Of a stretch of 64,000 nt of DNA, positions 16,183-50,800 are shown piece by piece. This DNA is from Bugula neritina (lineage: Eukaryota > Animalia > Bryozoa). The DNA is taken from NCBI GenBank assembly GCA_964035545.1, contig OZ037766.1:25966339-26030338 (forward strand). The letters run 5' to 3'. Below the pieces are notes generated by a model. It ran no database searches. It was not told the DNA's origin and worked only from the letters and a program-made list of their open reading frames with translations. Made by a program: the position numbers and the translations under genes. Position 1 is the first letter of the stretch. Each line of letters begins with the position of its first letter.

Positions 16183-16520
16183 CATTACTAACTCCTCGTA
16201 CGTCATTCTTTGTCTGCACACTATTTTATACAAATAGGTTGAGAAGACAATTTCGACCTCTTCCCCTTGTCTTCTGCTGAAGTATTGCTCAATACTAAAC
16301 TGCTTCAGCCTGTACAAATAGCTAATAAAATATTATCTCAGGATGTCTCAAGAGTTGAGGGTGACAAGTTTAAAGGGTTACTCCATGTTGTCATTCATAA
16401 GAAATACTGCTCCGTCCTTGTATACTATTAATTTACTATTTATAATGATTGATGGCCCTTTCACTGGCAGCAATATACAATATTAAAAGATTAATCATCT
16501 ATTAATAGTACATATATAAT

Positions 16521-16954: not shown

Positions 16955-19835
<2,881 letters not shown>

Positions 19836-21134
19836 TGTGTCTAATTCAACTAAAAAACTTACAGAATGAACAAAATTGTCAACTGTCTAATGCCAAACAC
19901 GAGTTATTAACTTATAATTATTTCAAAAGTATATGTAGCAGTTCATAATGCTTCTTTATATCATCATGGTCGTAGATTTTTTAATAACATTGCAGATTAA
20001 GATACTGATACTAGTGCTGATAGATCATGTTGAGAGTTGTTAAATCACTGATACATAGTCCCAACAAACAGTGTTGACCCAACATCATTATCATTCATAA
20101 TTATCAATATCACTATGAATATGATTATTTGCTATGTAGCATATCCACTACTATCGTAACAAATAAATATTTAATTTTAGTTATTAGTCATTTAGTGAGA
20201 GTAAAATAGAATCCAATACTTCAACTTTAAGTGAATCAATTGATGAATTACAATACTATTAGTATTAGTATTACTAATAGAGCTTTTAATCTAATTCTTA
20301 TAGTTATAGTTAGTACTACTACTACTATTACTACATCTACTCTTAGTCATAGTATTAGTACTTTTACAACTACAAATAGAAACTTGAAGAGTTGAACTAG
20401 ACTAAAATTATATTATTGCTTTTTTTTTTAACAAGGTCACAATCATAATGATAATTGTTTACTGTCCTCTATAAATATTAACTGTCCTAACATATATAGT
20501 ATATAGAATTGCAAAATCATAATTAATTTTGATGAATTAGTGAAACTGAATGTGTAGACTTTCAATATAGTGAGTTTCAGCTTTGCTCCATAGGCATATG
20601 CATATGCTTGGAGCAATAAAACAATTACTTTTTATAGCCGCTGCTTTAGAAACCAGTATACAATTGTGAAAAAAATAATAAATTGATCGGTCAAAAGAAA
20701 CTTCATTACGTTACGAGAAGACAACTGCTGTAATTGTAAACTTCAGGAAGTTGAACTGTGCAATAACCAAGAAAGCAATGTTCATAAATCATATTATTAT
20801 TTTAAATAAATGAAAATAGAATAAATGACATTAAGTATCATACAAGAATTTTTATTGACAAAAAATAAAAATATCTTGGGGCAAATAACCATAAATTGGT
20901 TTTGAACACTACTACACAATATCACAGTCAACTTTACACAAGCCTAATTACTAACAGTGGTGACAATAAAATGGCTATAGTAAAAAATATGACACACAAA
21001 AAGAAGTTGCAATTTATAACTGCAGGAATTAAATAAAACAGATAAATAGTACAATATAGCAACACATCAAACGCACTGATTTACACATTACAATAACTAT
21101 CTTATTGCAATACTAGTACACGCAGTAACTCGAG

Positions 21135-27100: not shown

Positions 27101-30100
27101 GTCTGCACGTCCCGTACCGGAGGCATTTGAGTAGAAAGAATATCTTCCTCAGCATCAACCTGTGAAATCAACAATTCAGACCTCAAGTTTATACAATATA
27201 TCACACACCCTACATCAACTCTATCCAGAATCCTAACATCAGAGTTTAAAGGCTTTTGATTTGCTGTAAATACTCACTCAGGTTTTTGCACACAAAAATT
27301 ACAGTTCAAATTAAAATATTTTTTCTATAACTGCGTTGAAAACTGTGTCAATTATTTTCTGTATATAAAATCTACCTGACTATATAGAATAAGCGAGTAA
27401 AGAGTTAATTTATATGATATGTCAAAAACATTTTGGAGATAGTGGGGCTTGGGCTCTAAAGAACTTAGAGTAAACTTTGAACCCTTAAGAGAAAATAGCA
27501 AACTATTCAACAACAATCTCACCCTATGAGTGACAAGCTTCTACATAAAGGTGTGACTAAAGCAGGTCGCAGGCGAATATCTTTACTCATCACTCTAGTC
27601 CACCCTATAGTTGTGATTACTCATGTTTTATCTGCACATTATCTTACCTGCGCATTCTGGTTGGTGTTTGTTGGCTCGGTAGTTGTCTTTTCTTTCACAC
27701 CTGAACGCTCAGAGGTAATCATACTCGGTGTGACCGAATCCAGCTCAACAATAGACCTGTTAAAACAGAAGTGAAGACATACAAGCAACACGCAAAGGGC
27801 ATGCTAGAATTGGCAAATGCTAAGAAAATGCTAGAATTGTCAACTGCTATGAAAATTAACTTTGTCACTTGCCAATTGTCACAGATAACAAAAACAGCAT
27901 CAGGCAATGACAAGTACCGTGTCATTGCTCAGTACTATTAGAGCGATATGAGAGTATACATATAAGTGGAGGTACGACAACTCCAACTCACCTGGACACA
28001 CTGCCTCTTGGGTTGCTAAGGTTAGCTAGAGATTGCATCAATGAGCTCTCCTCATGGGTATTCAGATGGGTGGGCGTGTCCACTTCCTGTATTATACTCA
28101 ACTCATGTAGGTCAAGGTCAACTAGACCAGGTTGGAAGGTTACGGGAGGTCTTGTGCTTCCTACAGAGCAATCAAAGATCTTCAAAAGTAAAGCAGCAGC
28201 ACACTGGCAACGTTGGAGTTAAACATGGCTGACTCTATGTAACAAAACTGGCTTAAAGTACAGTCAATATAATATTTACATAGAAATAACATGTGTATAC
28301 AAACTAATTGCATAGCAGTAGCTACTGATATTCAGGATTTATAAACTTTGCTAGTCATTGAATATAAGATTTGCGTCCTCTTCTTGAGAAAACAACTCCT
28401 ACATACTTGACCAGTGACTATACTACTTCACACATTTATGTTACTGTAGTGGATATGCAACCAAATAAATCAAGACTGTGGAGCTGGTAATCATCAAAAC
28501 CAGATTTACAAAATATGGAGGCAAGTAACTAAGAAAGTAACTAGATCTATGCTGCTGGTAGCCATAGAAACCGGTAACCATAGAAAATGGTAAGCATAGA
28601 GACTGTAACTGTGGAAACCGGTAAGTATAGAGACATACTGTTGGGAGTAAAATAATCTCCATCTAGTTCACCAACTGCATCTCCCAAGACTCTACCCAAA
28701 CCATCTTGAGTAGCATTTAAATTTTCGAGTCTAGAGGGAGCTAGCAGCTTTCGTTTCTGCTCTTGAATTTCAGCTAACTGCTTGCGCAATTCTTCCTGTC
28801 TCCTGCAATGAGGTCATGATTATTAAAACATTGTGAGAATTCTAACTGAATTACAAATAATTGGTTGGTGGTAAAATTTAAGACTGTGATTGCTTTGTTC
28901 CAGCTTTCATTAATTAACCTAAAACTAACATTTATGTTCTAACAACGAGGTTGATTATTAAAACTCCAACATAACTTTACCTATTGAACTCTTGCTGCCT
29001 AGCCAGCATTTGCTGATGCACCACCGACCAGCCAATAGGATCTGGTTGCGAATTTAGAGCAGACCTTCCAGAAGGTTCTACTTGTGAAGGAGCAGACGAT
29101 CTCCCAGAAAGCTCCACTAGAGGAGATACTGAAGGTCTTGCCAAAGTATTCACTACTGAAGTAGGTGTGGATGGGAAATACTGAGATGTCAAGGTACCAA
29201 TAGATGATGGAGGTTGAGTCCGAGGTCCAGGAGGAAGCAGTGAGTATGTGGAAGACAGGTTACCAGAGAGGGAGGAGCTGACACCACCCTCACTAGTATA
29301 TGGAACTAAGTCTTTGTGCCTTTCAGCAGATATTCTCTGAGAACTCAAAACATCTCCCCACGTTGGTTTCTGAGATCCCGGCCTAAGCAAAAAACTAATC
29401 TCTGAACATTGCGTAATCAGCCATTTTAGAATAATAACTTATTCTACATCACCATGAGGAGGCTACGTATATATTCAACTACAGTACCTCATTATGCATA
29501 AACTAGATACTGGTGTTTTCAAGGATTTGTGGGCAAGTTTGCAGAAATAAAAAATACCTGTCACTGCTTTGAGTAGAAGATTGCGGAATATCCATTAGCA
29601 AACTTTCTCTTTCGACCACCGGCATGTACGAGGGCTGTGGATGCACAGATATTTTAGACTGTGATTGGGCGAGTGGTTGTGAATGTAATTGTGATTGGAC
29701 AATTGGCTGCATCTGAGATGAAGCTGTATCTTGAATAAAATGTTCATCTCTCGTTGATGACATCATTTCCTGAAGCCTCTGTAAGGTTCTGGAATGTTCT
29801 GCTAGATCATCACGGAGCTTCTCTGCATTTCTCAGTTCTAGATAAAATGTACATTACACAGTAACAATTTTAGGCAAGTGACAGTGGCTGCAAGTGGCAG
29901 AAGGTGATTGCAGTTCTGATGTTTGGAAAAATCACTTGACAGCAACTGTACAAAATGTCAACTCATATTTAAATTTGATAGTTTTTAAAAATAGAACAAG
30001 TATATTAGACAAATTCCAACATTACCTGGTATTTCACTACTGACTGAATCAACTAAGGGGGCTCTCATTAAACGTTCCCTCTCTGACACTGAAACAAATC

Positions 30101-33100
30101 CAGGTACATTGCTATCCTGCCATGCCTGCTTTTTAGGAGACGTGTCTAAAGGATCACGAGACACACCTAGAAATGAAAAATGTCCACCATAGTCGTATAT
30201 AAGTTACATATATCAGTGATCAACTGTTACAGGGCAGGTGGAATGAGTTTATACGGAGAAGGAAAAATGAAGTATATAACAAATATCTGAGTTAAATTTA
30301 TCATATTGGGCTGTATCTATCGGCAGCTCATACTCGGGCAGTGACTGCTCATAAACTTGTAATGATGTCAAACAGCAAAAATAGATATTTAAACTGCTTT
30401 TCAGATTTGAAACCAGATTTTTGGGCGGCTTTGTCTACCTACACCACACAATATATATTTTACCGTGAATAAAGTACTATACTGGTAAAGGGAAGAAACC
30501 CCTTAAGCTTTTGAAACTTTTTAGCACAGTTGCCAGAGGTAAAACTTTACCTTGAAAGTTGCGTGGCAAACCACTGGCCTGACTACCTGCTACAGGCCCT
30601 CTATGATCAGGCCTAGGTAGACTGAGAGGGGCAATACCGCCATAAGCCAAGTCATCTGGTACTGCAACCTTATGAGTAGAAATATCGGATACTTGGCTGA
30701 AATGGTGCACCAGTTCTGGAGCATCAGACACTTGAGGAGCAAGAGGTGGAACATCTGTCACTGTATTGCCATGAGCTCTAGGTATTATGTTATTATGAGT
30801 TACTACATTATATGTTCTCTCAGGTATGCCTCCCCTAGCCAGCACACCTCTTTCAGTAACAGACATGTAACCAGGTGGGTGTGGTACTCCCCCAACATCT
30901 TCATTAGTAAACCTCTCATTTTTTCTAAATCTATCCAGCTGAAGTTGTAGAGATTCTGAAGAAGTTCCCAGACTTGACTCTAGTGTGTCCTTATGCAAAG
31001 TGTAACCAGTTCTTGGCGCACCACCAGGCGTATCCGTGTTAGACTCAGTTCTGTCTAAGAGCAACTGAGGGGAGTCTAATGAGAAACCCCCATTACTGCG
31101 GGTTTGAGTTGAAGAAATATTGCTAGGGGCTGTGGAGGTCATCTGAGAAATCTTGCGTCTGATACTCTCGCCTAGTTTAGCTTTCTGTCGCAGATACCAC
31201 TCCCAGGTAGATTCTCCGGGTAGCCTATTGGTGGTGTCCAGATGAGTCACGTCACTGCAGAACAATGGCAGAATAGACGTCTGCTGAATTGGCAAGTGAG
31301 AGTTGATTAATTAAACTCGAGAGGTTGATAGAGGTCTATACAGTGCACTTGTCTACTTTAACCTATTCAAGGAGCAGTTAACTTGACTTCAGCTTAGCAC
31401 ATGTTCCATACACACTACTCACCTGTGAGGGCGTACTTCAGTACCCCCAGCAAGATGGGGAGACTCATTAATATCCGCAGCATTGCTGGTATCATCATCA
31501 GGGAACTGTTCCATTTCTTGAGATGTAGACGAGGTGCTCACAGTATGTGGCTCTTGCCCACCCTACCCGCACACGTAATATGATATGAGGCTATTCTAAT
31601 GTGTGTGTGTGTAATTCCAATTAAACTTTATTTCTAAACTCGTAACTAACATTTTCAGTTCAGTACATAATCTAATTCAAATCACAAGTAAATATTAACA
31701 GCAAATTACAGAGAATCAGCTGATATTTGAGCATCACAACTGCTATGGCAAGTAACACATTTTTTGTTGACTATCTATTCAAAAATGTAGTTATATCATT
31801 TTAGATAATCCTCACGGCCTGAAAACTGTTTCACAGCATATTGTAATATATAGTAACATCTGTGTATACTCTTAGCAATGAGTCGGAGTACTTCTATTTG
31901 ATGAAGTAGGATTTGCTTATGTAAGTTACAGTTGATTCTTACCATTAGATGAACATCTTTCATTGGTGAGTGGTGTACAAGGGGTGTAGTAGGTAGCTGG
32001 GATGTTGTGGGTACAGGGGGTGTAGAAGGTACAGGGGGTGTAGTGGGTGCAGGGGGTTCAGGAGACGCAGGTGGAAGTATATGGTGAGTGTCTTCTGGTG
32101 CTCTATGAGTGGAAGTGTCTAAATCATCATCTTCTTTACACTCATTCTCCCACTGCTCTTTCTGATTATCTATTTTCCTTAATATCTTTTTCAGCACCTG
32201 TTATAAAATATGATGTAATACAGTAGATTATAATTATGCAAAGCTCGCAACTCCCACAGTAGTTTGAGAACTAAAGCTTGAATATAAAAATATACTTTGA
32301 TAGAAACATTAGTTGGTGAAGGTGGGAGTCATGGTACCCAGTTCTGTGTTGATGAGGAGACAAATCCCAAAATAGTTACTGCTGTAAAAAAATGTTAAAA
32401 AAGTTTACAAAGGAAGCTTTGAAGTTCACGCATTAATTGGTTGTTTAGAAGAGAACAGATCTAGCGATAGTTTCAGCTATGTCTAGAGGTCTTGCTAGAC
32501 ACAGAAGTAAACTGCTTTCAGTGTAACCAATAAAGTCCCACCTTCTTTCTCTTCTTCTCACTATCACCATCCGTGTCCGTGTTGTCAGACGTGGGCGCCG
32601 TGTTAGTAACATTCTTGAGTGGGGTGCGCTCTCTATTTAGGTCCCCGTCCCTCACTCGAGTGATTGGGGGCTTTGGTTCTATCTCAGAGGAAGACAAGCC
32701 TGTGGTCTCAGTAACAGATGGTGTTAAGTCACTATTTAGAGCTGGAGCACAGTCTAAAGGTATGAAATATAAGAATAAATAGTTACCATTTTGAAAACCC
32801 ACTAATCAGACTTGTAAGCATGCACAGCATTTCACAGTACACAAACTAACGAGTATTATATAAGATAATCAAGTATTGAATGTGCACATATTTAGCAGCT
32901 GCTGAATGTGGTATATTGTATCCTAAAAATTTATATATATATATGTTCCATTCTGCCTCACAAACAACACGCATTTTGCTTATATAACAGTTTTCACAAA
33001 TAAATTTACATTTACATAGTGGCTGTTGTACCATATGAACTTCTAGTAGACCTGCTATAACATATTCACACACACCCATTAGCAGTGACTGACGTTACCT

Positions 33101-35863
33101 CTAAGGTCAAACTGATCGTACTCATTAGCAAAGACGTCCTCCACTTTACGCTCCATCTGTGTCTGTCTGTCCGTCTCTCTCTCCATCACCACGTGTGCAG
33201 GAAGAAACAGGGATTGTGGGATGTGCTCGAGATTCTGCTGCCTGAATAACAGAATACGACTCATCATATTATGTAACACCGCCATTAGTCATTACAGTAA
33301 CAGAAGTTCTACGGAGTATAACACTTCGCTGTCAGCTTAATCACCTGTGCTTTCTGTCAGCTTTCTCTAGCAGGTCCAGCTCAGTCATCATGTGATCATA
33401 GCTCTGTCTCATCCTTTCACGTTTAAGGGCGTGTGCCCCGCGTACCCGAGCTTTCTCTAGCCTGAAAAATAACAAACAACATAGCAGAAAAGTCATCTGT
33501 TGACAGTTACGATACATATATTAGGAAAATGTATTAATTTCATATTGAGATATCATTAAGTGAATACAATCTAACAGATAGAAATTGTCGCAAGTGACAA
33601 ATTAGAGTTCATGTCAACCTTTCACTGGCTGAACTTTGTGTCTGTAGCTGATATTTCTTCTCTTTAGCTCTTTCCTGCTCGGCTCCAACGATTCCATCAT
33701 TCACAGATTCATCGTTCCTCTCCACTAAACACTCGTAGCTGGGTATTTGGTAGGGATATGTGTAAGTGTCCGCATCTGTCATCTGAAACATATCCTAAGG
33801 CTACATTACAGCTAGGGGACACCTAGTAACCCCTACCACATATTGCATATGATAGGAGAGTCATTGTAAGGTCACAACGGCTATTATATTTGTCATCAAC
33901 GCTAGATTAGCATCGACATCTTTAAGAGTCCCGGACACGTTACATTTATGCAGTATTAAATTAGTCCCATATACCTTGGCTATGAGCGGAATACAAATTT
34001 AGCATAGTATGGCCAATATAGGATTTTTAAAGCAAACTATTTCAAAATGGGTTTAATAAAAAGACATAATTTTTAATATCATAGAATTCGTCTTATTTGG
34101 AACATCAGGAGTTAGCTATCAGTTATGAAAAGCATTGCTTTTCTATAAAATCTAAGAAAAAAAGATAAAAATTCAATGCGGTATACCTGAGCATATGCTG
34201 CTTTAGCCTTGTGTAGTAACTTGTTTAGATCTGGTTTAATAGGTGGTGGTAGGCTGGCTATCTCCCTAGCCCGTATTTTCTCCTTAGCTACAGCCAGTTC
34301 TCGAGCTTGAGTTACCTTAGCATCTTCAGCTGTTTGCAGCACTCTGTCTTCTTTTAACTACCCAAACAGTAATGTATATTGTAACTACCCAAACAGTAAT
34401 GTATATTGTAACTACTCAAACAGTAATGCATATTGTAACTACTCAAACAGTAATGTATATTGTAACTACCCAAACAGTAATGTATATTAAAATAGGGACA
34501 GCAAGTGTGATTTTTCAAACAGATTTACGAACATTAAATGAAAATAAAAGCTGCATTTATTAAATTTAAACTTTGTGAAATTAAAACTAAATACAGATAT
34601 AAATAATAAAAAAAATGTCAAACTTGAAAACCTCAAGTTTTAACTTGTAGAAAAGAACAGGCTAAAAAGAAACTTTTTAAATTTAAACATACATGAATAT
34701 TTATGCTACTTTACCTGAAATCGATTATAAATCAATTAATACATGCAATTATTATCTTTAGAAGTAGCAAAGACAATCTATAAATTTATAAAAATAGCTT
34801 AATACTGATTGCTTAATAGTACTATCAGATATTATGTTACAAACCTTTGCAATAGCAGATGCATATCTCTCTTCCGCTCTCCTTTGATTTTCTTGCATAG
34901 CCATAGCCTTACGTTCCAGCCCTAAGTCCACCTCGTCTGCCTGGGTGTGGGCCTCCCCAATACACTTTAGAGAGTCTGCATACTCTTGCTCAAGCTGCTC
35001 TATCTGTCAACATGCATGTCCACAATAGACATATATGAGTAGAAACAATAAGGGTAACAGTATACAATAGATACAACAGTAATACAATAGATACAACAGT
35101 AATACAGTGAATACACTACTGAAACAACATGCAGGTCTTCTTGTTCAAACAAATACCGCGTAAAGATTGTCTGAAACCATGTTATAACTGTTGTCATGTA
35201 ATAGAATAAAACGGAGATTTTCTCACCATTCAAAAAACATCACTGAAAGCAACTATAAACTTCATATGTTAAATTTGATCATAAAATAAAAATTAAACAA
35301 AAAACTAAACTAGACATGTTATGATTATAAAACTGAAATAAAAAAGAACATGTATTTACTCTATTCTGTCTCTCAACTTCCCATTCTTCTTCAATTTGCT
35401 CAGCTAAAATTTCAAGTTGACGCACTTTCTCCTTTTTTACAGCTTCTAGCTTAGATTTTGCAAACGTTTTTGCTTTTTCTCGAACCTAAAAACAAATTAG
35501 TCCATGCGCAATTTGACACAGGAAAACTATTATAGTTGAAAACCATTTTATTGTTATTACATGGATAAAAAAATGTAAGCTACAAGTAAACCTTTATTAG
35601 ATGCATAAACTTCTTTTAAGCATGTAAATCGTATAATATCAAACATAAAAGTAATGATAGCAGCTATAAACTATAAACCACTTGAGATTCCTTTAAAGTA
35701 GTACCCAAAAAGCAAAGGCATATTAATTATTAATATTAGGAGGTAAAGTATGCCCGACCTGCGTTATTCTAAGTTTACGTCTGCGCTCTCTTTCATCTCG
35801 AAGCAATCGCTCCACTTCTCCAGGACTAAGCCGCAGCCTTGCAACACCTGTCAGCTGAGGCAT
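21135..35863 (-). CDS. CEP295: Centrosomal protein CEP295 (Ana1/KIAA1731) orthologue, ~1756 aa, 26 exons
   Basis: Phase-consistent exons: 35863-35759, 35485-35360, 35003-34845, 34357-34187, 33794-33619, 33461-33345, 33241-33099, 32753-32542, 32197-31943, 31562-31423, 31254-30551, 30166-30026, 29837-29558, 29382-28981, 28802-28639, 28160-27992, 27756-27648, 27159-26999, 26687-26575, 25434-25231, 24805-24134, 23943-23884, 23521-23457, 23072-22865, 22204-22117, 21261-21135. N-terminal motifs RLRLSPGE...ERERRRKLRITQVRE, IASLPPP and LEKARVRG; internal HELSIIQEVDTP and GVLDEPEITF (PICA-like); C-terminal ALMS motif ERTQRLYNQLAEVKQKK. Confidence 0.9.
24330..24470 (-). repeat. 42-bp coding tandem repeat within a CEP295 exon (14-aa unit, ~3.5 copies)
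   Basis: Encodes EISLGSREHSTAAR / EVSVGSREHSRAAR / ELSVGSREHRTAA. Confidence 0.85.
25670..26437. mobile_element. Non-autonomous TTAA-flanked DNA transposon (Kolobok-like), 768 bp, in a CEP295 intron
   Basis: TTAA|AGGATTGCTCTATCTT at 25666-25685 and AAGATTGAGCAATCCT|TTAA at 26422-26441 give a 16-bp TIR with 1 mismatch and a TTAA target-site duplication. AG-starting termini fit Kolobok rather than piggyBac (CC-starting). Confidence 0.72.
28557..28634. repeat. Degenerate ~16-bp tandem repeat (5 units) immediately after a CEP295 splice donor
   Basis: GGTAGCCATAGAAACC GGTAACCATAGAAAAT GGTAAGCATAGAGACT GTAACTGTGGAAACC GGTAAGTATAGAGAC. Confidence 0.65.
34355..34488 (-). repeat. 27-bp tandem repeat (5 copies) containing the CEP295 exon 4 splice acceptor
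   Basis: Unit TAACTACYCAAACAGTAATGYATATTG; on the minus strand each copy carries TTTG(G/A)GTAG|TTA. Confidence 0.92.
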
Positions 35864-38655
35864 ACTTCTTCTTGCTTTCAAATAGTAATAATATTTAGAT
35901 TGAAGCAAGGAGCTTTCCAACTTTAATAGCAAAATAAAACATCTGTTAAGCAATTATCTTTTTAGTTTACTTTTCAATTCTAAAATCAAAATAGCAACAG
36001 GCTTAAATCATAAAATTATAAATAATACAATTAAAATAAGAACAAACATACCTAATACTCTAATAATTTTAATTTATTAATAACTTTGACCATTTAAGGT
36101 TAATATTTAATATTCACAGAACTTATAGTAATAAGAATGATTTATAATCAAAATGACTATAAATATACCCAATATTACTACACCATAAATCCCAACGTTA
36201 TTAAATAAAATATTAATCAATTGAAATTTAGAGATTAGAACATATGCATCAAGTAATAGGAAATGACGCTACGAGTATGACTATCAGTATCACCACAAAA
36301 CTGAATTTAAGTTAGGCTTAAATTCTCATTATGATATTGAACTTGATTATATATTTAAGCTAAAACTGGAAAAATAAGTTTGACAACAAAAACAAATAAT
36401 TATAGAATTTCAATTTATAATCATTTACTTTTAGTTTTATAATTTACATAATTCATAATTGATATTGTAAACTTAAAGATGAAAGTTAATACAACTACAT
36501 ATTGATATAATAATAATATAAAACTTACAATCTGAATATCATTATTATTATAATTATTATAACACATTAATTATTATTTATATTTACATCATTATCAATC
36601 AATTATCATCAGATTTATCATTACGAATATAATAGTCATTAATTTTAAATTCAAATTTAATGGCTAATATAATAATAATTATTATGATCCTCATCATGAT
36701 CATGATGATCATCATCATGATTAAATTTAATTAACTTCAAAATTATCATTATGCAATACTTACAGTTACTATGAAATTAGGTTGTTATAGATGTTATGAT
36801 GAAATATTAAAAGAGGCTCTTTTACATTTAAAACCGATTATATTAATTTTGCATTGCATTGCATTGGTCTTGGGTGCAATAGTGAATAAACATAGTTATA
36901 TTTATAGTTATGGTATCGAATATTCAGTCTGTAGCACAATTTTAATTATTATTGAATCGGAAATGCTTCTGTTTACAAACGTTTTCAAACTATCCGCTTG
37001 TTGGTATACTAATAGACTGCTATGTAAACAATAATTTGTCGAAAGTAGTTGATTTTACACCGATTTCAGAACCTAATCAACGGCACTATTTTTATTTCTA
37101 CAAAGAAAAGATAACTCTCAATAAAAAGCGTCTAGTATTTTGTAGGGTGTTTATTGTGTCAATAATTATTTTCACTACATAATTTTTGTAGCAGTGGTAA
37201 GTAAAGAAAATCCTGTTTTATAGTTTTTTGAAAAAAAATTGTAAAAAGCATAATTGGCTAAAAGATATATACTTTGAAGACAAAGAAAATAAGCTTTCAT
37301 ATATTATTTAATTGCCATATAATACTTTTAAATGTTTAAAACTTAGAAATTAATTTTAAGCTATATTCATAAACTTCTGTATTATAGCATAGCCTGATGT
37401 TTAATAAATCTGTTTACTAAGCAAGTTGTAGGCATTGGGAATATAAGTTCTTGGTTAAAGGAAGAGCAAAAACATGCTTGCTATAAATGTAGTGGGCGAG
37501 GTTGAATAATTTCTCAATAAAATAATATTTTGTAAAAATTTATGCCATAGTAATTTTAAAGTATGCTTTTTTAATGCAAAAATAACTGCTGTATCTCAAA
37601 TTTTAAGTTTAATAATATATAAAATAGAACTGGATGAAAAAACGACTTTTGAATTTTTCACTTTAAAGTTGTGATTTCACTCCCATCTAAAGTAAATTCT
37701 AAAAAACTTATAACTCAAAATATATTAATTAAATTCTTACTTCAGATAAAATAGTTAGAAAAACATATAAAGAAATTTTGAAAAATTGTAACAGTTTTGA
37801 ACTTTAGAAAAAAAGCAAGTTTAGAGATAAATTTTTTTATATAGATCTGTGAGTTAGGTTTAAATACATAAAACAAACGCTATTTCAAGTTTTTAATTCG
37901 GAGATGAATTTGGCAGTGTAACCCATTATAATGCTTGTGAGGTATTCAGGTGCACACTGGCATAAATTACTGGATATATTGTATTTTTGCTATTGTGTAC
38001 AACTACAATACAGTTGAAATAATTGGTTGTTTATGTTTGGATGCAAGTACGCTACATCACAATGCCAGATACTTATAACATAGCCTTAATCGTTAAGGAC
38101 ATATCATATGAAAAATATATTATATTTATGTTTTGGCTGAGTGCAGTTGTTTCCAGTATGTCTAGAACATTGGCAGCTGGTTCACCTCTGATAAGGACTT
38201 TTAGCTTTGCGTACATTTATTGTTACAGGAGATCATCATACTCTAGTAAGTTAACCTTTAGTAATAATAATAGTTTTTGTTGATCTAGATTCTAGATTGT
38301 ATAACATTCATTTAATATACACTGTATTTCACTTTATATTATCTTTACATAATTTATTACAAATTAGCTGTTTATTTAGCAAAGTTTTGTATGTTGTTGT
38401 CAGAGTGATAAATATAGTGTAAATATACTGCATGACCTCTAAAAAGCCTCTATATACAGTTGGCATGTGGAATGCTTTCTATTTAGCTAGGTGTATATTG
38501 GTCCAGAATTACACTACATGTTTATATATATATTTAAAATTAATATGATACACAAGCTACAGCACAGTTTGTGTTTAGCTGTTTGTTCAGCATGTCTTTT
38601 CATGAATTCATATTTTCTGCGTAGGCTTATCATCTACAACTTTTGGCGAAGAGAA

Positions 38656-40264
38656 ATGAGGCACTGGAGAACAGAGGTCATTGTTTTGATTGGGGTTGTC
38701 CTTCCAGGTTGCTCTTTCACTGCTCCTGTTTATGACGGTAATTTGTAGAACTGCTAGAATATTTTTAGATAAAATTATTGTAGCATAGTCTGTGCTACAA
38801 CTAGATATAATAAATTCATAAATTCATGTCATAGTTCAATATATACATATATATATAGCCTACTGGTTGTGAACAAACTTACAACTATATGTTACATATA
38901 ATCCTTATATATAATATTTAGCTCAATATTTTTGTTTCTAATTTTTGTTGCATGTTGTTACTAGCTAGTATAAAGTAGAGCTAAACAAAGAAGTACGCAT
39001 AAATTGCAAAAAAGGATTTATCTTTATTATAATTTTAGCTAGCTTATGCTTTTTGGCACTGAGTTTAAAAGTTTTAAACACTTTTTATACTTACAACTCA
39101 GTTAAATCTCAATAGTTGCTAGGCGATGCTTGCCATAAGTGCTATAAATTTTAACTATACAACACGCCTTTTTGAAATTATTTTTGAATCACTTTTAGTT
39201 GTGCTGTATTTACTTCAGACGTTTCATTAAACAATTTCTTCATTTTATGTGACTCCACTTGTAAAGAATTATAGTATTGCTTAATATCAGAAATAATTTT
39301 GTGTTGATTTTTCAGGTTCAGAAAGCAACACGGCAGATCTAGAAACTCTACTCCAAATCTGCCAGAAGAATCCAGACTTCTGCAATGACCAGCCATTTTA
39401 CAAAATGGTTCACAGTGCAATCAGACATTCTGGTATCCAGAAGAGAACAGCCACCTATATGACGGATGCCTTATTTCTATTGTGTATCAGGAAAGGTAAG
39501 GGCAGCTGCTTGAATACCATAATGGCACCCTAACATCTGTCTAAAACATGCTTTCTACAGTTTAAAACCTTCAAAGTTTGCCAAAATTGACAAACCAATT
39601 TTCCATATATAAGTTGTATTGTAATATCTACTAAAATGTACCATATTTGCAACATTTTTAGTCGTAATATTTGTGAAATACAAATATTTAATCGGTTGTG
39701 AACAAAAATGCTACAGTACCTGTCAGATACTGGGTGTTTATTTGTTTAACCCAACTGTAAATACCGGAAATTGTGTAATTCAGGCTATTCAATAATAATA
39801 ATGTTATGCTTTTACAATTTGACAGGCATCGCCATGTAAGAGTATATTGACTGTCATTAGCAATTAATATTGAATGATCAATGCTACAATGTTTAGCCAA
39901 GACGATATATTGTATTAATTAATGTCTGTATTTTTTGTGCAAACTATATAGTTGAGGAGATTTTTTGGCAACTATTTGTCCATTGTATAAAAATGTTATT
40001 ATAGTGTATCTAACATCAAAAAGTCATCAAGCTGCTGTGGAAATTACGCAGTACTGTATTGACATACTTCCTTGTTTGTAATTGCCAACAATATTAAGTG
40101 AAGCCTACTGTATCATTGGCTAGAAAAAAACATGTTATAGGAAATAAGTACAAGGTTTACATTTTATTCAATGTTTTTAACATTATTGATAGCTTTTGTT
40201 ACAGTTATGCTAATCAGTATAAGAGTTGGAATGACTTGCAGATTCATTAAATATTCAAGTCACG

Positions 40265-40356
<92 letters not shown>

Positions 40357-40737
40357 TTATTCAATACTATGGTAAGGTTGCTTTCACTATGCTTTAATAT
40401 TTAAAAGTTAACTCATCTTTTGTTATTATTACTTTTAGGATCTGAAGGCTGTGATAGAAAGGATACGTTGAAGATGTTGAATGCATTATCAACAGAAGTA
40501 AAATACATTAATACTAAATCAAAATGGAACAGCCATGATGCAACGAACTTTAGACATAACAAATTTTCATTGAAGCTAATGCCTAGTGACGCATTCGTAG
40601 ATCACTATAGAACTAAAAGGACGTTAGGAAATAGCATACTGAGAATTATAGCACGGCACATATGTAATAAGCAACCGAGTATGTGTAGTGATGTGCCGAA
40701 CAGTTCTATTGGCCGATCCGAACTCGGTGCTATCTAA
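38656..40737 (+). CDS. Uncharacterised secreted prepropeptide (candidate neuropeptide/hormone/defence-peptide precursor), ~186 aa, 3 exons
   Basis: Exons 38656-38737, 39316-39495, 40439-40737 join in frame (phase 1/1) with canonical junctions. There is a hydrophobic signal peptide MRHWRTEVIVLIGVVLPGCSFT|AP, KR at 39441-39446, RTKR at 40609-40620, three Cys pairs, and AATAAA at 40809-40814. Confidence 0.75.
40267..40354. repeat. (AT)44 microsatellite
   Basis: Perfect dinucleotide run in intron 2 of the prepropeptide gene. Confidence 0.97.
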
Positions 40738-40808
40738 CAGTAGACGATCTTAACACTGGTATATTATCACATATAACATTAAACAAGTCAATACTGAGAC
40801 GAGAGAAT

Positions 40809-40814
40809 AATAAA
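40809..40814 (+). terminator. Probable polyadenylation signal of the prepropeptide gene
   Basis: AATAAA about 70 nt after the stop codon. Confidence 0.5.
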
Positions 40815-41855
40815 CGCAGTAGTTCAGATTAGTAACCACATCATATGTAACCTAGCTATTTAGAAACAACAGATGGTTATTTTCAAATGTGCCATAAAAA
40901 CTATAAGTGCAGAAATACAGTTACCATGTTTTACATATGTATAAATTGGACTCGGGATAATTTAGTATGTACATTGCATCACCTAGAAACAGTCACTTTG
41001 TTTATGCATGATATAGTCTTTGATATTTGAATCTAAGGAATCGGGTTAATTTCCATTATAGTCTACATTCTAAGTCTTTTCATAAGCATATGAATGAAAA
41101 TATTCTATTAAAACTGTTCACGCATCCTATTCCTGATTTCTGGACTCAATAGCGTTTGCACTAATCACTTTTCAATAAACCATTATTGTGTTGCATTTTC
41201 TTTATTACACTTTTTGTCATTCTGTTTCATTGACTGTAGTTTCCCAATAGAGCAAATGTTTTACTTTTTAAAGTCTACTTATCTACAAGCAAATCATGTT
41301 TATTTTATTTAAAGAAATTCATAAAGTTAAAAACAATCCTTGTTAATACAAATTATGTATACCGACGACTGAAACTCGAGTCAAAATTTATTACTTTTAT
41401 TATAACTTATTATATACTGTTATTTTTACACATTATATATCTTGTATTTACATTGACAAATATATTGTATAATATTTAATAAACAAGAACAGCACTTAAC
41501 CAAATACTTTTGTCAACAGTTTTACAGCCTGCACACTAAACAGTACTGTTAGTCAAAATACAATATATTACAATCATGTTAACACAAAGTTTTACAGAAT
41601 AAAATAGAGTATAGATGAAACGCTATTAAAAGATAGCCATGAACACCTCAAGGATATGATATAGAATTAAGTAATATCAAAGTAATGATTTATATCTGTA
41701 AATGAAATATAGAACTCAAACAAAATATATGTTATTGTCAAAGGACAATGTGCTGTTACTAATCACCAAACAACTATTCATACCGATTCATCGGTTTCAC
41801 AGGAAGTGTTAGTAATAAACCTTTTGCTGAAGAGAACAATAAACAATAATCATTA

Positions 41856-44800
41856 TTAGACGGCATCCCCTTGGAATGTGGATAAAGATCTCTTTATATT
41901 GACTTCATTGAGTTGATTAGCTGTGACTACTTTAGCGGCAGGTTTTGAATTGATTACTATGACATCAGCTGGCTGATCATTAAAGTTAGTTGCAGAGTGA
42001 GGTTGAGTCAGTGACTCATTGTCAGTCTCACTGTGAGTTGGCGAGTTTGCTGCAGACGATGTTTCAACTTTCGGTTGAACATCTGACTGTAAATTTGATG
42101 CATTGTGGTTATCCATGTCCTCGTTCATCAATTTGCAATGCACTTCGGATGACACTGTATTGCTTCCATAGTCTGATGTAACAGAACCTGCGTAGTCTGA
42201 GTAAGTGGACCCAGACACGCTGGCACGTCTATTCATGTTTGGCGAGCGAAATGCAGGGGGAGGCAATGCCTGTACCAAGTAACTATTGTCTACGTCTCTG
42301 CCTCCAGTACTGTGCTGTCTTGCCTGCTCCTGCAAGTACTTGTGAGTATTGCCGTGTCTCAGAGCAGCAGACGTGCTGTTTATCAATCTGCTGCCGCATT
42401 CTGAGTGACTATGCTGATGGGTACAGGATGACCTGCCGGAGTCGCTGCCCGCATGAGGAGTGCGTGGAGAGGTCAGCGTATGCACCCCTGTCATCCCACT
42501 CCGTGTACTGTGCACCTCAGACGCCCACATTAGTCTGTAGTTCTCGTCATCGTTCAGGTCTAGCATGTCAGTGTAGGTGTTCCCTTGCCTTTGAAATATA
42601 TTAACAATACTATTATATAACTTAACTTACATTATGTTACCTGATGAGGAAGATAATGTGTTGATAGTGGAGCCTTAACTTTGACAGCATTTATACTAGT
42701 AGTATTAGATTAGGTATCAATAGACTAAATAGTTTTAAGCTTATAATTTGAACAAAATTATTATTACAAACACAATAACATCATATAAAAATTTACATGC
42801 ATTAAACAGAACCCTCTTCAAAGAATTTTTCAAGTTCTTTTAAATCAACTTCAACTAAAATGGCTAAAATATAAATTATTTTTATTTTAAATATAATTAT
42901 ATAAGCAACTTCATGGTTTAACTCCACTGCTTGCAAAATTACTACGGTAAGCAATAACCTAATGTAGCTGTTTCTTTTTCGATTGGCCACTTTGATCAAT
43001 CATCCTAATATTTCAACATATTGTCAACAAGTAACTGTACCAACCTGCTGTGTAATGTGTTGGAATGGTGATCAACACAAAGAGGAATAAATGCTTGCCC
43101 ATCTATTTGCTTTTTGTTATTTTCTTCAGCTTGCCTTCGCCTTTTCTTGTGTTGGGAAACTTTTCTAAAATAAAACCATGATTGCATATTAGCCAACCAT
43201 CATTTCTTTGCAAAAGAGGCTTGCGGTGCATTAATCTTACTATAAATTTAAAAGTTTGTTAGACGTATGTTGAAAGTCAAAGCTGTTGAGAAAAAACTTT
43301 AAAGATATGTAGAATAACTCTCAAAAATATCAGTTTTATCATCATGTCTACAAAATCATTATATGATGCTACAGAATCTTATAATTAATTAGAGTTGTCA
43401 CCTGTGATAAACAAAGCACACAACTCCGATGACAACTATTAAGACCACAACCACAGCTGATCCAATTATTCCATAGGTGAGTGGAGAGCTTAAGGATTCT
43501 GCTGAGGACTTGACAGAAGCTGCCTGTACTTCCACAGCTGTCAAATAAAATGATTTTAAATCTTGGTGACACCAGACAAATGTGTAATATGTATATATAA
43601 GATTATTGATGCATGCATGCGATACGTAGTGCAATGAACTAGAAACCTCATATGAAAAATGAACTTATTGTGTAGAATTTGTGTTAGATAGCTAGGTGTG
43701 TTTTATCATTCATCAAGTATTTAATATTATGCATCATCGCTAGGGTTAAAGTCTTGGGGAATTCTTATCAATAAAAACGCTGATAGTTTCAAACGCAATG
43801 ATACAAAAGTATTTTGTAATTTCTAAAAGTATCACACAACAATCCGAAATATCGATTAATATAAGTAATATTTTATCACCAACCCTATCGAAAACATAGC
43901 TTTTAGTAAAATGTTGTAATGAGAAAATTATTATATTCCAAATTTTGTGTTAATATTGAACAAATACAACGGTATTATATGCTTTTGGAGTTATCATTCT
44001 ACACATGATGATGCAAACTATATTGTGATAGTGAGATGGTACTTGCATTACACCCTCACAAACTTACACAGTTGAATGTTTATAGTGACGACCACGTTTG
44101 CAGTTCTGGGAGGTAGTCCAGAATCTACAGCTTCTATTATTAGTGTATACGAGTCTCGAGTGTATAGCCTCTTTTGACCAGCTAATGAAATTATCCCATC
44201 TTTGTTTATCACAAACAACTCGCTATAAAAAGAAAACACATGAATAGATGAACACAAACAGAAATTATTTCATAACCTAAATAAAATTATTTTTTATATT
44301 TTGTATTTCATGTATTCAGTCATCGTGAATACCAACAGAGAAATCAAGCCCAACAATTTTAACCAATAAAATATGAGTAAAAAGATGTATTTGTTTATTT
44401 ATTGAAACTATGTTGCTTCAGTTTATACATGCTCGTATCTATTATTTATTTGAATGCGTCTTATCAAACACCCGATGACTTACCTTACATCCGAATGAAG
44501 TATTTTATATAGAACATCTTCATTCACATCATCTGGGTCTCTAGCGGATACACTACCCACAATTCCTTGCTCCACGTAGAATGTGTTGAAAGTGTAAGAG
44601 TTTTTATCAAAGAGTGGGTTATTATCATTCTCATTTAGTACGTTGATGGTGACCTCCACAGCATCTGACTGTTGAACAACATTATTTTAAATATTATAGT
44701 TTGTATTATTCTACATTGTAAGAACTACATTTTAAACTTTAGTAAGATTTGTCTTTTCAAATTATTTGGAATATCATAGTTTGTATTATTTTACAATGCA

Positions 44801-47800
44801 AAAAGCGTTTTTTAATTTTACTGAAAGTTGTCTTTTCCAACTTGAAAAATGAAATCTAAATAAAAAAATTATTAATATGCAGGAGAAATTTGAACTTTTG
44901 AGCATATTAAAAACTAAGCTTATTCAATATAGGCGTAGTTACTTTTTACAAAGAACTCAATCCCAAATGCTAATAAGAATTACCCAATAAAGTTATTACT
45001 ATTTCTGGTACATGAGAGAAAAAGATGAAAAAAAATTGTGCTTGCCAAACATTACCAATCCTTTTATCTACAAGAATGTGCTAGTCATGTACAAGGAAGG
45101 CAACTTTCCATATACTGTATACAAAGGAGAGATAATTTTATCTGAATTTTGCTTTACAAGTGTAATCAGCTACATAGTTACATATCAACCAAATGTCAAT
45201 GTTGATTTTCTTGACCATTTCAAGGTTTAATTTGTGATCTCTCTCCAACAGTCACATGATGTTAAACAACTAGACATACACAGTACTAGCTAAAGTAATA
45301 GAGTTACTTACATGCTTGCCATTTGAAGCCACGACTGTCACTCGATGAACAGTTTTATGTTCGTAGTCCAAACGTTTTACAAGTCTGAGGTCAACGTTAT
45401 TACTATCAAAAAAATAAAAGTCACGTGAATAAATAGGGTAAATAAATTGCATTATTATGTCAAAGATAATATTTGAAATGTTGAATAAATAACTTCAGAT
45501 AGAAATTTGTCAAGCAGTTGTTGCACACACAACCTTTAAGATACAGTCTAGACTATTCTACTGCTATGACATATCGTATAGCCTACCCACGATGTGTTGT
45601 CGCAAAATATGAGCTCCCACCATCGTCACTAGCTGAATCCACCACTTTCACAACCACCGGGTCACTCTACAAACATACAAACCAGATGTAAACATGTGTT
45701 TATTATTCATTCCAGTATCAAGCTTATAATATAGTCTAACATTAGACATTTGTTGTAGTGTATATACGGTAAAAATGTTGACATAAGTCACTAAATTCTA
45801 TCTTAAAGCATTAAATAACCTTCTAACTTCACCTTTTTAGTAGCTTGTTTTAATGTTATCATTTTTATATTCTAATTTTTACACTGAATCAAATAAATAG
45901 AGTAAATGAATAAAGCTAAATAAAACTTCAAATAATATATACTAAACAGTATCTTTAAATCCTTGCAGAGTTCATTACAAGTTAAACAACTCAACAACTT
46001 AAGAGAAGACAACTTTGAAATGACTTTATCATAACACACAGCAATCAACAAGATGTTAGAGAATCTCAACACTGCAAAGCATTATATAGCACACCAATGT
46101 TAATAAATAGTCTAGAGTTTTAATAAGCAAATGGCATCACTCTTTATTTGGCAACAAACAAACTATAATATGCAAACAACAAACAACAGATGCAGCTAAA
46201 CGGCAAACAATAAGTAAACCTATTAGTTATCATAGTGAGGATAACTCTAAAGTAGAAGGCAGGTTTGTATGCTCATGGTGACAATAAGGGGTGAAGGTCA
46301 ATCACATAGCAACATTAAAACACTACACTTTAGGTTATAATCGAGCAGCTAGGGCAAGCCAATTAGGCTTCTATAGTGGATCAATTAGAGAGGCCTTAGG
46401 CCCTTATAATAGATCAGGTCGGGTAGCTGGGTGTTACCTGTTTAGTTTTTGAGGAGACATAAACTAGCGAAGCTAATCTCTGTAACAGGGAGGTGAATAT
46501 TTTTTCAATATCTTATCTCTAGCACAAAGAATAAATTAAATGTAAATTTAAAACATAGGCATTTCTCTATAGTTGCATAGACTTTATTTCTTTGCTACAT
46601 TTACGGGCGTGTCAATTCTATTTTACCCAGTTGTGAACTGTGCCGAAGCTGTGGTATATGATATGTGTAGTTTTAGAAATTATTTGATAGAGCATATAAC
46701 TCCCAAATATGTCACAATAGTTTGTTTCATTAAATCAAATTACTAGTTTTTGTCAGAAAAGTTACTCCAACCAAAGCTCAAACAAGAAAATGGGCACGTA
46801 CTGTCACTAAATTGAATAATAATTTTAAGTAAAGTCTATAGATATTTTTAAAATTAAAACAAACAAGCAGAAAATAAATTCAAATCTAAAGCAAACCTAG
46901 CATTTTTATCTGAGCTGGCCAAGCACAACATCAAATAAGCAGCGAGAACAACGTCTATATAAACTGTTGAGGAGTAAATTCCTAACTATGATGTTCAAAA
47001 GTATACCTGTGAGTTGTAGTTGATTGCCATACTCAGTATAGTAGAGTTCAGTTTAGTATATTCAGATACCGAGGTAGCATAACTCCTTTTAGTGAACTCA
47101 GGTTTGTCCCACTCAGTTGATACTATAGTTACTATCAGAGTTGTCACGTCTTTCATACCAGGGTCGGACAACTGCTGTGCCTAGACAAATCACAAGATGT
47201 ACATTAGGATTACACATAGATGCAAAAGATTGGGTCAGTATGCAGTACTTCTTAAAAGAAAACTTCAGTTATTTTTCAGCTTCATAGCAAGTTAGAGTTG
47301 TCAATGAAAACATATTTAATAAAATAAGATATAGAAAACACAATAAGCCACTCCTACTGCTATCTCATTGATCTGTGTAAATCTCATGATATAACAACCG
47401 TTCTATCACAAAGAGTCATCCTTCAAGAATCTTTGACCATTTTGCCTTATTTTGAGAGCAAAATATTTTACAATAAGTTGTAAGCACGTCTCTTATTGGC
47501 CTATCAGCACTCACTGTATTGTAGGCAGTATACATGGCCTCATACGATAGAACTATATCGTTATAATTTTTAGACATTCCTAACAGAGAAAATAATATTG
47601 TCACCTGAAACCTACCTGAACTTGAAATAAGAACGTTGTTCCTAAGTCCAACTTGGATGTGTCTAACACCGTGACTTTACCCGTAGTTCTGTCAATGTGG
47701 AAATACTCGCTACCGTCTCCAAACAGGAAGTACTCAATTGGCTCATCGAAGTCGTCTTGATCGTATGCAGTGACTTGAACAACCAGATCTCCCTTTAAAA

Positions 47801-50800
47801 CATCAATAGAATACTGATAGTGAGGCGGCTTTATTGAAGAAGCTATAGAAAAAATGATACTATTGATTTTTTCTGCGGATAAATGTTAGTTAAAAATTCA
47901 GACATTCCAATGGCCTTGATAAAATTATAAAGATCGTGTGTAGCACAGTAGACATAATCATATTATTACTTATACTTGTATACTAAAAATTTCACACTTC
48001 AAATGCATTTAGAATTTTATAATATAGCTCTATATAGGGTATAGATGTAGATGCACAATTCCTTTATCTCTTTTGACTCTTTTCAGAGTCAAGTTTTACA
48101 TATAATTAACTTTTTATAAAAACATTTCAACATCTTGACTTATCTAATTCAATGAACTGGTAACAAAAGAGAAAGTAACTAAAGCCTGCCTCATATAAAA
48201 TAAGTCATAACGAGTAAGTATAGAAACACACAAACTAAAAGCAGAGTTGAGTGCATATATCTTCTAAACTCATAACTTAATTACTTCTTCTGCTTTACAT
48301 ATTACTGGGTAATACTAAAGTATGCTTTAAGATAAATTTAGCAAATGAGCACTCATTGCAAGCAAAACGAGAAAGATGTTGGTTTGGATAAAACCAACAC
48401 ACAGGTTACTGTATTAGCATTAATCAGAAGCAATGCACTGTTTCTGTGATGTGGTTAACAGGACTTGTGAGGACTGGGATAATGTAATTTTGCGCACAAT
48501 TATCCAAAACATCCACTGATTCACATATAATCTGATTTTCATATTCTATGCAGCCTTTAGATACAAAACATGCAGAGCACCAGTGCTTGTTGCACCTGTG
48601 TGAGAATATAGTAAACCTTAAAACTACTTTTAAAAAATCCAATTAAGGACAAAACAGCAGAAATACTACAAAAAGTCGTACATTTCTTGCTAGCAATGTA
48701 TTTTCAGAGCATAATTTATGTTATTGCATTCGGTAGCCGGAGAGAAAGTGAGCTAATTCACCAATGAGCCCCACTAGGCTACGAGTAGAGAATCCGAAAA
48801 CGCCCTTATAAAGCCTTTTTTGAAGTATTTTTGAGAGCACACAACTCAAACTTCACTACACAAAAGCTTCATGCTGCGAATTGTGACTAAAACAATCTAT
48901 GTTATGTATATAAGTGCTTTTAAAATATAAATGAATACTTTCCATTACACGCTTCTTAAATATGCATGAGCAGAATATTCAAATTAATATCATTAATTAC
49001 AAGCGACCAGTTCTGTTATCTAAGGGTGCTACTAAAACAGTTCTCATCAGCAAACCAATCAAATATACAAAGAACTGTATATTATCACTAAATCCTACAG
49101 CTTTGGCAACCTCTACATACCATTTTTACTTCCTGTGAGAGTGACACTCTGTAGTTGTACTGATTAAACTTTGGCCTCAAATCATCTTCATTCTTTATAT
49201 TTATAGTAACTGAGGCTACGCTCGTCTGCTGCTTGTTCCCACAGTTCCGCCTTGTCTGACAGTCCTTCAGAATGCACCAAGTAGTTATATAGTAAAGAGG
49301 GGCACGGAAATGTGCTTACTGTATTACATGCAATTTGATTTTCAAAAAGTAAATAATTGTCTGGAATTTGAATAAATATGCTAGGAAAAGCGAAAAAGAC
49401 CATTGGTAAAAAGTAATTAGCCTAAGATTCTCAATTTTTTAATGCTCAACTTACAAATATATTTGCCTAATCACATACTATAGGTCCTACTTGTATGTAG
49501 TTACAACTTTCCAACCCTCAAGTTTATTGAATTCATTGCAATCTGTGAATAAAAGCTGCAGAGACTCTTTTTAACTGAGCTTTTAATTATTTATATTATA
49601 TAACAAAACTCTAGAGACTAAATCAATTCAGCATAAAAGAACTAAAATAAGAATAAATTTCTATGTGTTCGTAACAATTAGTCTGTATCTTGCTAGCTTG
49701 TTCATTAGAATTGTGTTTAAATAATTCACTAAGTTAGTTGAATCAGGAGTGAGTTATTTCTACCTTAGCTAGTACAGTGAAAGTATATTTCTTTTTAGTT
49801 TCGTAGTCCAGGGGGGAAAGAGTGTAAATAGCTGACTTGCCACCAGTCATGCTACGTAGTTCAAAAGTTTCCTGTAACAGATCAGTACTAATACTTATAG
49901 ACGTAATTCAAGCATTACCATAACAATATGATCAGCTTTACAAAGTGGTACAGCTTAGACAGATATAAACATAATCACTTTGATCTTTTAGGTTGAATTA
50001 AAATTAAGAATTATCCATTAAGTTATGTTTTTTATATGTAAATCACTTATTACTGTAAGACACCAAGTGGCTCCAAATGAAGAGCTCAGAGTTTAAGAAA
50101 CAATGAGTTAAAATTCTTTATTATGTCAAGTACTTAACAGTGCATTCATGCAGTAGAAGTATGCAAGTATGTGTGGAGGCTCAATGAATAAAAACTGCAG
50201 AGACTCTTTTTAACTGAGCTTTTAATTATTTATATTATATAACAAAACTCTAGAGACTAAATCAATTCAGCATAAAAGAACTGAAATGAGAATAAATTCC
50301 TATGTGTTAGTAACAATTAGTCTGTATCTTGCAGAATTAGTTCAACAGTTGAACAACATTTCAAAAATCCATAAAACATATTTATCAACAAAGGTTTTAA
50401 AAATATCAATACACCAGAAAAGCAACTGGGGGAGAGTTAGTTTTGGTGTTGGGTGACATTGAATGGAGAGGAATATTATGGACTTAATATAAGGGATCTA
50501 TTAAATTAGACAGTAGTCAGGTTCTATCAATGGGACAAACATCAAACCTGTACACTTCCCTCCAGTACATTGCTCAGCAAAAAGCTTATAAACTTAAAGA
50601 TAAATTCCTATACTGACAATAGATCTATTACATATGACCTCACTAGCATTAAAAACACAAGCTTTTATGCACCACACACTTCTTATCCATCAAAATACTG
50701 CCTGTAAAATTGGGTCGACTAAATACACCTCCCAATATACATAGATAACTTAGATCTAAGAAGCTCAGGTTATTATATTTTGATAGCTATAATGCAAGAA

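Follow-up and report, generated by a model that had tools for sequence, protein, structure and literature searches.

A mis-annotated single-copy gene of Bugula neritina encodes a predicted secreted precursor with three putative disulfide-ring modules

Our analysis shows that the forward strand of the window (the whole 64,000-nucleotide stretch of Bugula neritina DNA, to which coordinates refer unless stated otherwise) carries a real, spliced, single-copy gene for a 186-residue predicted secreted precursor. Judging from its sequence, the protein looks set to yield as many as three peptides with a disulfide ring, none of a known family, and hormones or neuropeptides are the most likely predicted products. 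We regard the gene as a genuine orphan that had been mis-annotated: its peptide precursor has an unusual layout of three rings, fits no tested family, and is most plausibly of the neuropeptide or hormone type. Peptide signalling in bryozoans is almost uncharted.

The 186-codon frame is formed by joining three coding exons, and its translation equals the sequence predicted in an earlier note on this DNA; both the splice ends and the alignment breaks of a transcript contig confirm that the exons splice in frame. The first coding exon (38625..38737, +) holds a short 5' UTR, the ATG at 38656, the signal peptide, and the start of module 1, its coding part spanning 38656-38737 (82 nt). The second (39316..39495, +; 180 nt) encodes most of module 1, a Lys-Arg site, and the first half of module 2, while the third (40439..40737, +; 299 nt) supplies the end of module 2, a variable spacer, a furin site, module 3, the tail, and the stop codon. 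GT/AG ends and pyrimidine tracts are present at all three, both coding introns are in phase 1, and the GC content is 38-48% in exons versus 26-29% in introns and flanks. A (TA)44 run occupies 40267-40354 within intron 2. In addition, transcript contigs contain a non-coding first exon (38129..38245, +; 5' end approximate; donor GT at 38246), which contigs of runs X1 and X3 join to about 38625, and an in-frame stop lies upstream of the precursor ATG in the transcript. The 3' UTR (40738..41179, +) has transcript coverage to 41168 and AATAAA signals at 40809 and 41174. The gene has no paralogues in the genome, where the three other matches to its motif equal the control count and all fall in closed frames.

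Splicing is directly visible in RNA data. A 1122-nt Logan contig from run SRR4020085 (L004) encodes a 186-aa orthologue (P0003), which was reached through a protein search with exon 3, as the cluster of the matched fragment contains it. Aligned to the window, this contig falls into four blocks of 79-95% identity, whose edges lie exactly at the predicted junctions. In read mapping over 37400-40250, two runs span junction 38737/39316 (a GT..AG skip of 578 nt), and a third has a loose end that agrees with it. Loose ends at 39496 that continue into exon 3 occur in three runs, each from a different study; no joints were seen in a DNA run mapped to the same region. Junction 39495/40439 was seen through these loose ends and the L004 alignment rather than as a listed joint, because the mapped stretch stopped before the (TA)44 run. 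A contig of run X1 matches L004 in both length and coordinates and is therefore not independent of it. Accordingly, both coding junctions for which RNA-seq support had been sought are present in transcript contigs, with evidence from three studies, all of it from a sibling Bugula type that is about 8% divergent in DNA rather than from the window's own type. In that sibling type, a spliced and expressed transcript with an intact short frame thus exists, as expected of a convertase precursor.

The public genome annotates the locus as 'hypothetical protein EB796_023712 [Bugula neritina]', a 77-aa protein beginning at Met58 and continuing into intron 2. This call is a wrong read-through, and the gene is mis-annotated. 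The window and the public assembly differ by about 10-19% in aligned non-coding DNA, in line with the described sibling types of B. neritina, for which COI identities of 88.5-91.8% have been reported (PMC4183541). In a JGI assembly of the other Bugula type, about 59 nt are missing at the end of exon 3 (L003:3821-3822), and the protein derived from it (P0001) has a different C-terminus that lacks the Gly-Arg site; since three further copies (L005, L006, and L008) are intact, the gap would be an assembly error or a deletion allele. The DNA run (X4) contains two intron 2 haplotypes in the interval 39407-40250; differences at as many as 9 of 130 bases separate them and point to high heterozygosity, and three silent-looking differences lie in exon 2.

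The gene sits between a CEP295-like gene (27500-35863, -), to which it is oriented head to head, and a single-pass cadherin gene (41856-55600, -) with a long Ser/Thr-rich cytoplasmic last exon, to which it is oriented tail to tail. These neighbours give no clue to its family. About 2.3 kb separate the CEP295 start codon from the first exon of the precursor gene, which makes a shared promoter region possible; the cadherin stop codon lies about 690 nt from the end of the precursor's 3' UTR. Elsewhere in the window, a multi-exon gene at about 1500-16200 (+) resembles a class V aminotransferase or cysteine desulfurase by eye (the one exon tested has no Pfam match). The stretch 17000-27300 (-), including 19186-19386 and 24129-24857, carries exons of a gene with a P-loop, small-GTPase-like exon, as well as a Ser-rich frame of 242 aa that contains a 42-nt tandem repeat; the start of this frame resembles a signal peptide but may be an internal exon.

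The precursor begins with a predicted signal peptide (aa 1-22; 38656..38721, +) that has a basic start, a 9-residue hydrophobic core, and small residues at -3/-1; its hydropathy peaks at 3.67, and both hydropathy and the -3/-1 pattern fit by eye, although the core is short. Besides Cys19 in the signal peptide, there are six mature cysteines at positions 43/50, 84/92, and 163/170, which agrees with the C-x6-C, C-x7-C, and C-x6-C pairs originally described. Their overall spacing is x6-33-x7-70-x6, with neither a CC doublet nor a C-x2-C motif. Basic sites are found at aa 70-71 (KR), 94-95 (RK), 145-148 (RTKR), and 179-180 (GR).

These sites would divide the protein into three products. Ring 1 (Cys43-x6-Cys50, C-x-K-x-P-x-F-C; 39360..39383, +) lies inside the 47-aa acidic module 1 (aa 23-69; computed net charge -3), which is followed by the putative Lys-Arg convertase site (aa 70-71; 39441..39446, +), kept in the orthologue. 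Ring 2 (Cys84-x7-Cys92; 39483..40452, +), which is split by intron 2, stands at the start of the middle segment of 73 aa (aa 72-144). Beyond this ring, module 2 offers no good site for cleavage: the RK found there is KK in the orthologue, and both are poor convertase sites. The whole 73-aa piece, rather than a short ring peptide, is therefore the probable middle product. The Arg-Thr-Lys-Arg motif (aa 145-148; 40609..40620, +), a predicted furin/convertase site, is kept in all copies and precedes module 3 (aa 149-178; 40621..40710, +), a predicted 30-aa amidated peptide of about 3.27 kDa. Module 3 would consist of an amphipathic helix, a ring (Cys163-x6-Cys170), and an 8-residue tail, with a computed net charge of +2 and a hydrophobic moment of 0.80. 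The conserved Gly-Arg (aa 179-180; 40711..40716, +) that follows could act as a signal for monobasic cleavage and amidation; it may, however, have no role in processing, since it contains a single basic residue and lines up with the second helix of module 1. A 6-aa tail after it differs at two of six positions between types.

Comparison of the window protein with P0003 (186 aa each, 90% identical) revealed 19 amino-acid changes, no indels, and an overall pN/pS of 0.32; as this selection test involves two sibling types only, substitutions are few. None of the changes touches the six mature cysteines or the KR, RTKR, and GR sites. The modules carry changes at 5 of 99 residues versus 13 of 57 in the spacer and tail (P=0.0014; pN/pS 0.19 versus 0.51), a contrast that is weaker when cores are defined by rule (3/64 versus 15/100 changes, P=0.043); for comparison, pN/pS is 0.08 in an exon of the neighbouring cadherin gene. 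Residues 22-53 are identical between the two types. Module 3 is likewise unchanged in P0003, with a single Val/Met polymorphism at aa 174 in L005/L006, and ring 2 contains two conservative or charge changes. The substitution pattern thus indicates that the modules are under purifying selection, and it bears out the suggestion that constraint is concentrated on the Cys pairs, basic sites, and modules. Between the two sibling types, conserved basic sites therefore flank conserved segments and alternate with variable spacers; constrained modules separated by variable spacers are the usual pattern in peptide precursors.

Considering these features together, we think it an even call that the gene encodes a lineage-restricted prohormone whose main product is the amidated 30-residue helix-plus-ring peptide. 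The signal peptide would direct the precursor into the ER, where each neighbouring Cys pair would close a ring. A prohormone convertase or furin would then cut at KR 70-71 and RTKR 145-148, a carboxypeptidase would trim the ends, and cleavage at GR 179-180 would allow the glycine to be converted to an amide. The expected products are the 47-aa acidic peptide, the 73-aa middle piece, and the 30-aa amidated peptide, the last being the most likely ligand, which neurosecretory or endocrine cells might release to act on a cell-surface receptor. From its size and layout (about 30 aa, a helix, one ring, an amide), a secretin-class GPCR would be the first guess for this receptor, and module 1 could serve as a second ligand or as a folding partner. 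Our data show transcription, splicing, frame conservation, and constraint, whereas the processing steps are deduced from established rules of the secretory pathway; the choice of a hormone or neuropeptide over a defence peptide is likewise an inference.

On a bolder and more tentative reading, which we hold to be possible, the precursor would be the first known representative of a hormone family not yet described, bryozoan or more widely lophotrochozoan, with a triplicated helix-ring-helix unit, providing two or three distinct cyclic ligands for orphan GPCRs or for signalling to the bryostatin-producing symbiont. The term 'new family' would here have as its basis a single gene copy, known from two sibling types within one species complex. 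Should the amidated 30-residue ring peptide exist, it would offer a new, easily synthesised scaffold for orphan-receptor matching, and also a candidate for tests of defence or symbiont control in B. neritina, which is a fouling organism and produces bryostatins. For the present, the narrow known range, the frequency of orphan precursors in related phyla, and the predicted nature of the function limit the impact.

The internal repeat proposed in the earlier note holds for modules 1 and 3 and is weak for module 2. With tests chosen after the pattern had been seen, modules 1 and 3 align ungapped over 22 residues (score 48, P=5e-5; P=2.5e-4 with Cys fixed), and local alignment gives no significance for module 2 against the others. 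A Cys-anchored test with the cysteines left out finds module 1 similar to both module 2 (P about 0.003) and module 3 (P 0.006-0.01), with no resemblance between modules 2 and 3. An old internal triplication of a unit of about 40 aa is hence plausible from sequence, and the modules probably arose by duplication of such a helix-ring-helix unit. Exon duplication was considered as their origin and rejected, because intron 2 falls inside ring 2 and module borders do not coincide with exon borders. The predicted structure of module 1 comprises a helix, a short ring helix, and another helix (mean pLDDT 69); fold searches with it returned generic helical hairpins only (best E 3.5, best Z 4.2).

Since the similarity between modules continues beyond the ring into the second helix, the modules might instead form one secreted helical-hairpin protein that stays uncut, or whose chains are linked by cross-module disulfides in the manner of insulin, acting as a pheromone, an adhesive, a matrix component, or a multi-chain hormone. 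The middle segment could be read in the same way: module 2 has no clear end, and its helix 94-107 is better kept than residues 108-144 (2 versus 9 changes between types). We consider this unlikely, as the Cys spacing is paired and local, with three successive x6-x7 pairs arising in only 4 of 20,000 shuffles, and every predicted cleavage product has an even number of cysteines. Moreover, a single-sequence model of the whole precursor does not fold with confidence (pLDDT 35), and evolution in the spacer is fast.

We also regard as unlikely a host-defence or symbiont-control precursor, in which module 3 would be membrane-active and module 1 would keep it inactive until cleavage. The amphipathic, net positive, and possibly amidated module 3 and the net negative module 1 would suit such an arrangement, as would the comparable helix plus disulfide loop of nicomicin (PMC6265681) and the bacterial symbionts carried by B. 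neritina (PMC4183541). Speaking against it, the charge of module 3 is low, the precursor has no BRICHOS or other defence domain, and the same ring motif occurs in the acidic module 1. In addition, defence peptides usually expand and diversify, whereas this gene is single-copy and its mature peptide nearly invariant.

A prohormone of restricted lineage agrees with the outcome of homology searches, in which single exons, or P0003 and its parts, served as queries (exons were joined only for the frame check and the comparison with L004). As the earlier note had anticipated, homologues came from Bugula only in every collection searched, and no known family was recovered among Pfam, PDB sequences, or folds. 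Exon 3 retrieved only a Bugula fragment from 5.8 billion proteins, and from 1.84 billion representatives the same fragment plus three weak matches to long proteins outside the ring region. Whole P0003 had no match at E 10, and its first two modules found only the mis-called Bugula protein. A protein search of JGI metagenomes gave no match; a motif scan of them gave 35 stretches, of which the 33 examined are chance frames that resemble the precursor nowhere outside the motif. Pfam returned sub-threshold matches only (DUF2989, acyl-CoA oxidase N-terminus), with no hormone family even at E 10, and PDB sequences gave no match. Restriction to Bugula is not proven by these results, because such searches are weak for short, diverged peptides and the bryozoan coverage of the collections is uncertain. 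In a language-model search, the neighbours were nearly all neuropeptide precursors (0.79-0.82); shuffled proteins reach such scores a third of the time, and we treat these neighbours as a lead only. The Atlas recognition score of 1594 falls short of what known families typically reach.

Within the spiralian precursor lists (PMC8557429, PMC8398477), QSGamide/PXXXamide (iPTH) was the sole family with a similar layout when compared by eye, and some of its precursors carry two tandem peptides. These protostome peptides share with the predicted module 3 peptide a furin-type site, a helical peptide with one ring near its C-terminus, an 8-residue tail, and an amide, and brachiopod and oyster QSamide peptides additionally share a [RK]-x-P-x-x-C stretch by eye (PMC8557429, PMC8398477). 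Such likeness could suggest that the gene is a paralogue that has diverged strongly from a known family, this one being the most plausible and calcitonin/DH31, CCHamide/EP, or allatostatin C the other options. We judge this distinctly unlikely: the QSGamide/iPTH ring is x4 in a peptide of 36-42 aa located near the precursor start, whereas module 3 has an x6 ring in 30 aa at the precursor end, and the N-terminal Asp motif and Cys-Gly-x-x-Asp of that family are absent from the Bugula precursor, which has no Pfam match to a hormone family. Furthermore, a canonical QSGamide/iPTH exon with a C-x4-C-G ring lies elsewhere on the same contig (G000:C2, about 12,488,020-12,488,235; L023:3521-3736, +), with its amidation site on the next exon near L023:4169, and it shows no similarity to any module (shuffle P 0.27-0.40). 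The three-ring gene is therefore not the iPTH orthologue, a candidate that we rejected, which leaves a remote paralogy as a slight possibility. Scans with the iPTH motifs were uninformative, the N-terminal motif matching an MCM-like exon and a non-coding frame and the second having no match. A chance frame or non-functional transcript, which the lack of homologues outside Bugula and of a gene model in the public annotation might suggest, is most improbable and already contradicted by exact splicing in three studies, the absence of indels, and the pN/pS of 0.32.

The gene is not among the 11 precursors, all identified by homology, of the B. neritina neuropeptide survey (PMC4990251). Another orphan precursor exon, with a C-x6-C ring between KR and RKR, lies at L024:1992-2228 (-; G000:C2 about 29,538,000). 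It has no similarity to the modules, and the same holds for a neighbouring orphan ring peptide (s1-475779). Lophotrochozoan calcitonin/DH31 precursors can hold more than one ring peptide, and these peptides resemble the predicted module 3 peptide in being about 30 aa long and amidated, with one ring and a helix. In calcitonin/DH31, however, the x5 ring comes first and the peptide ends in Pro-amide, whereas in module 3 the helix precedes an x6 ring, without Pro-amide or a Pfam match. Allatostatin C and CCHamide/excitatory peptide have a C-x6-C ring of the same size, but the ring sequence is unrelated, the terminal Cys-Phe/Tyr or His-amide is missing, and the precursor's products are much longer. 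Compared by eye, the ring motifs and terminal residues of allatostatin C, CCHamide/EP, elevenin, CCAP, and vasotocin, and the neurophysin that accompanies vasotocin, are absent, with no Pfam match, and the ring words have no matching context in the spiralian precursor lists. The precursor's Cys spacing also differs from the six-Cys spacing of insulin/relaxin, eclosion hormone, and clionin.

Nicomicin combines an N-terminal amphipathic helix with a six-residue disulfide loop, and the nicomicin/Rana-box type shares with the Bugula precursor this order of elements, a cationic peptide of about 30 aa, and an acidic pro-region (PMC6265681). The Bugula precursor differs in its larger ring, lower charge, three rings, and single conserved copy, and Pfam finds no BRICHOS domain in its pro-region. 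Orphan precursors are common in lophotrochozoans. Among them, GGRWamide has no sequence match to the precursor. Like the predicted Bugula precursor, both the oyster GSWN and the nemertean GGRWamide orphans are secreted proteins of no family with dibasic sites and several Cys-containing products (PMC8398477, PMC8557429).
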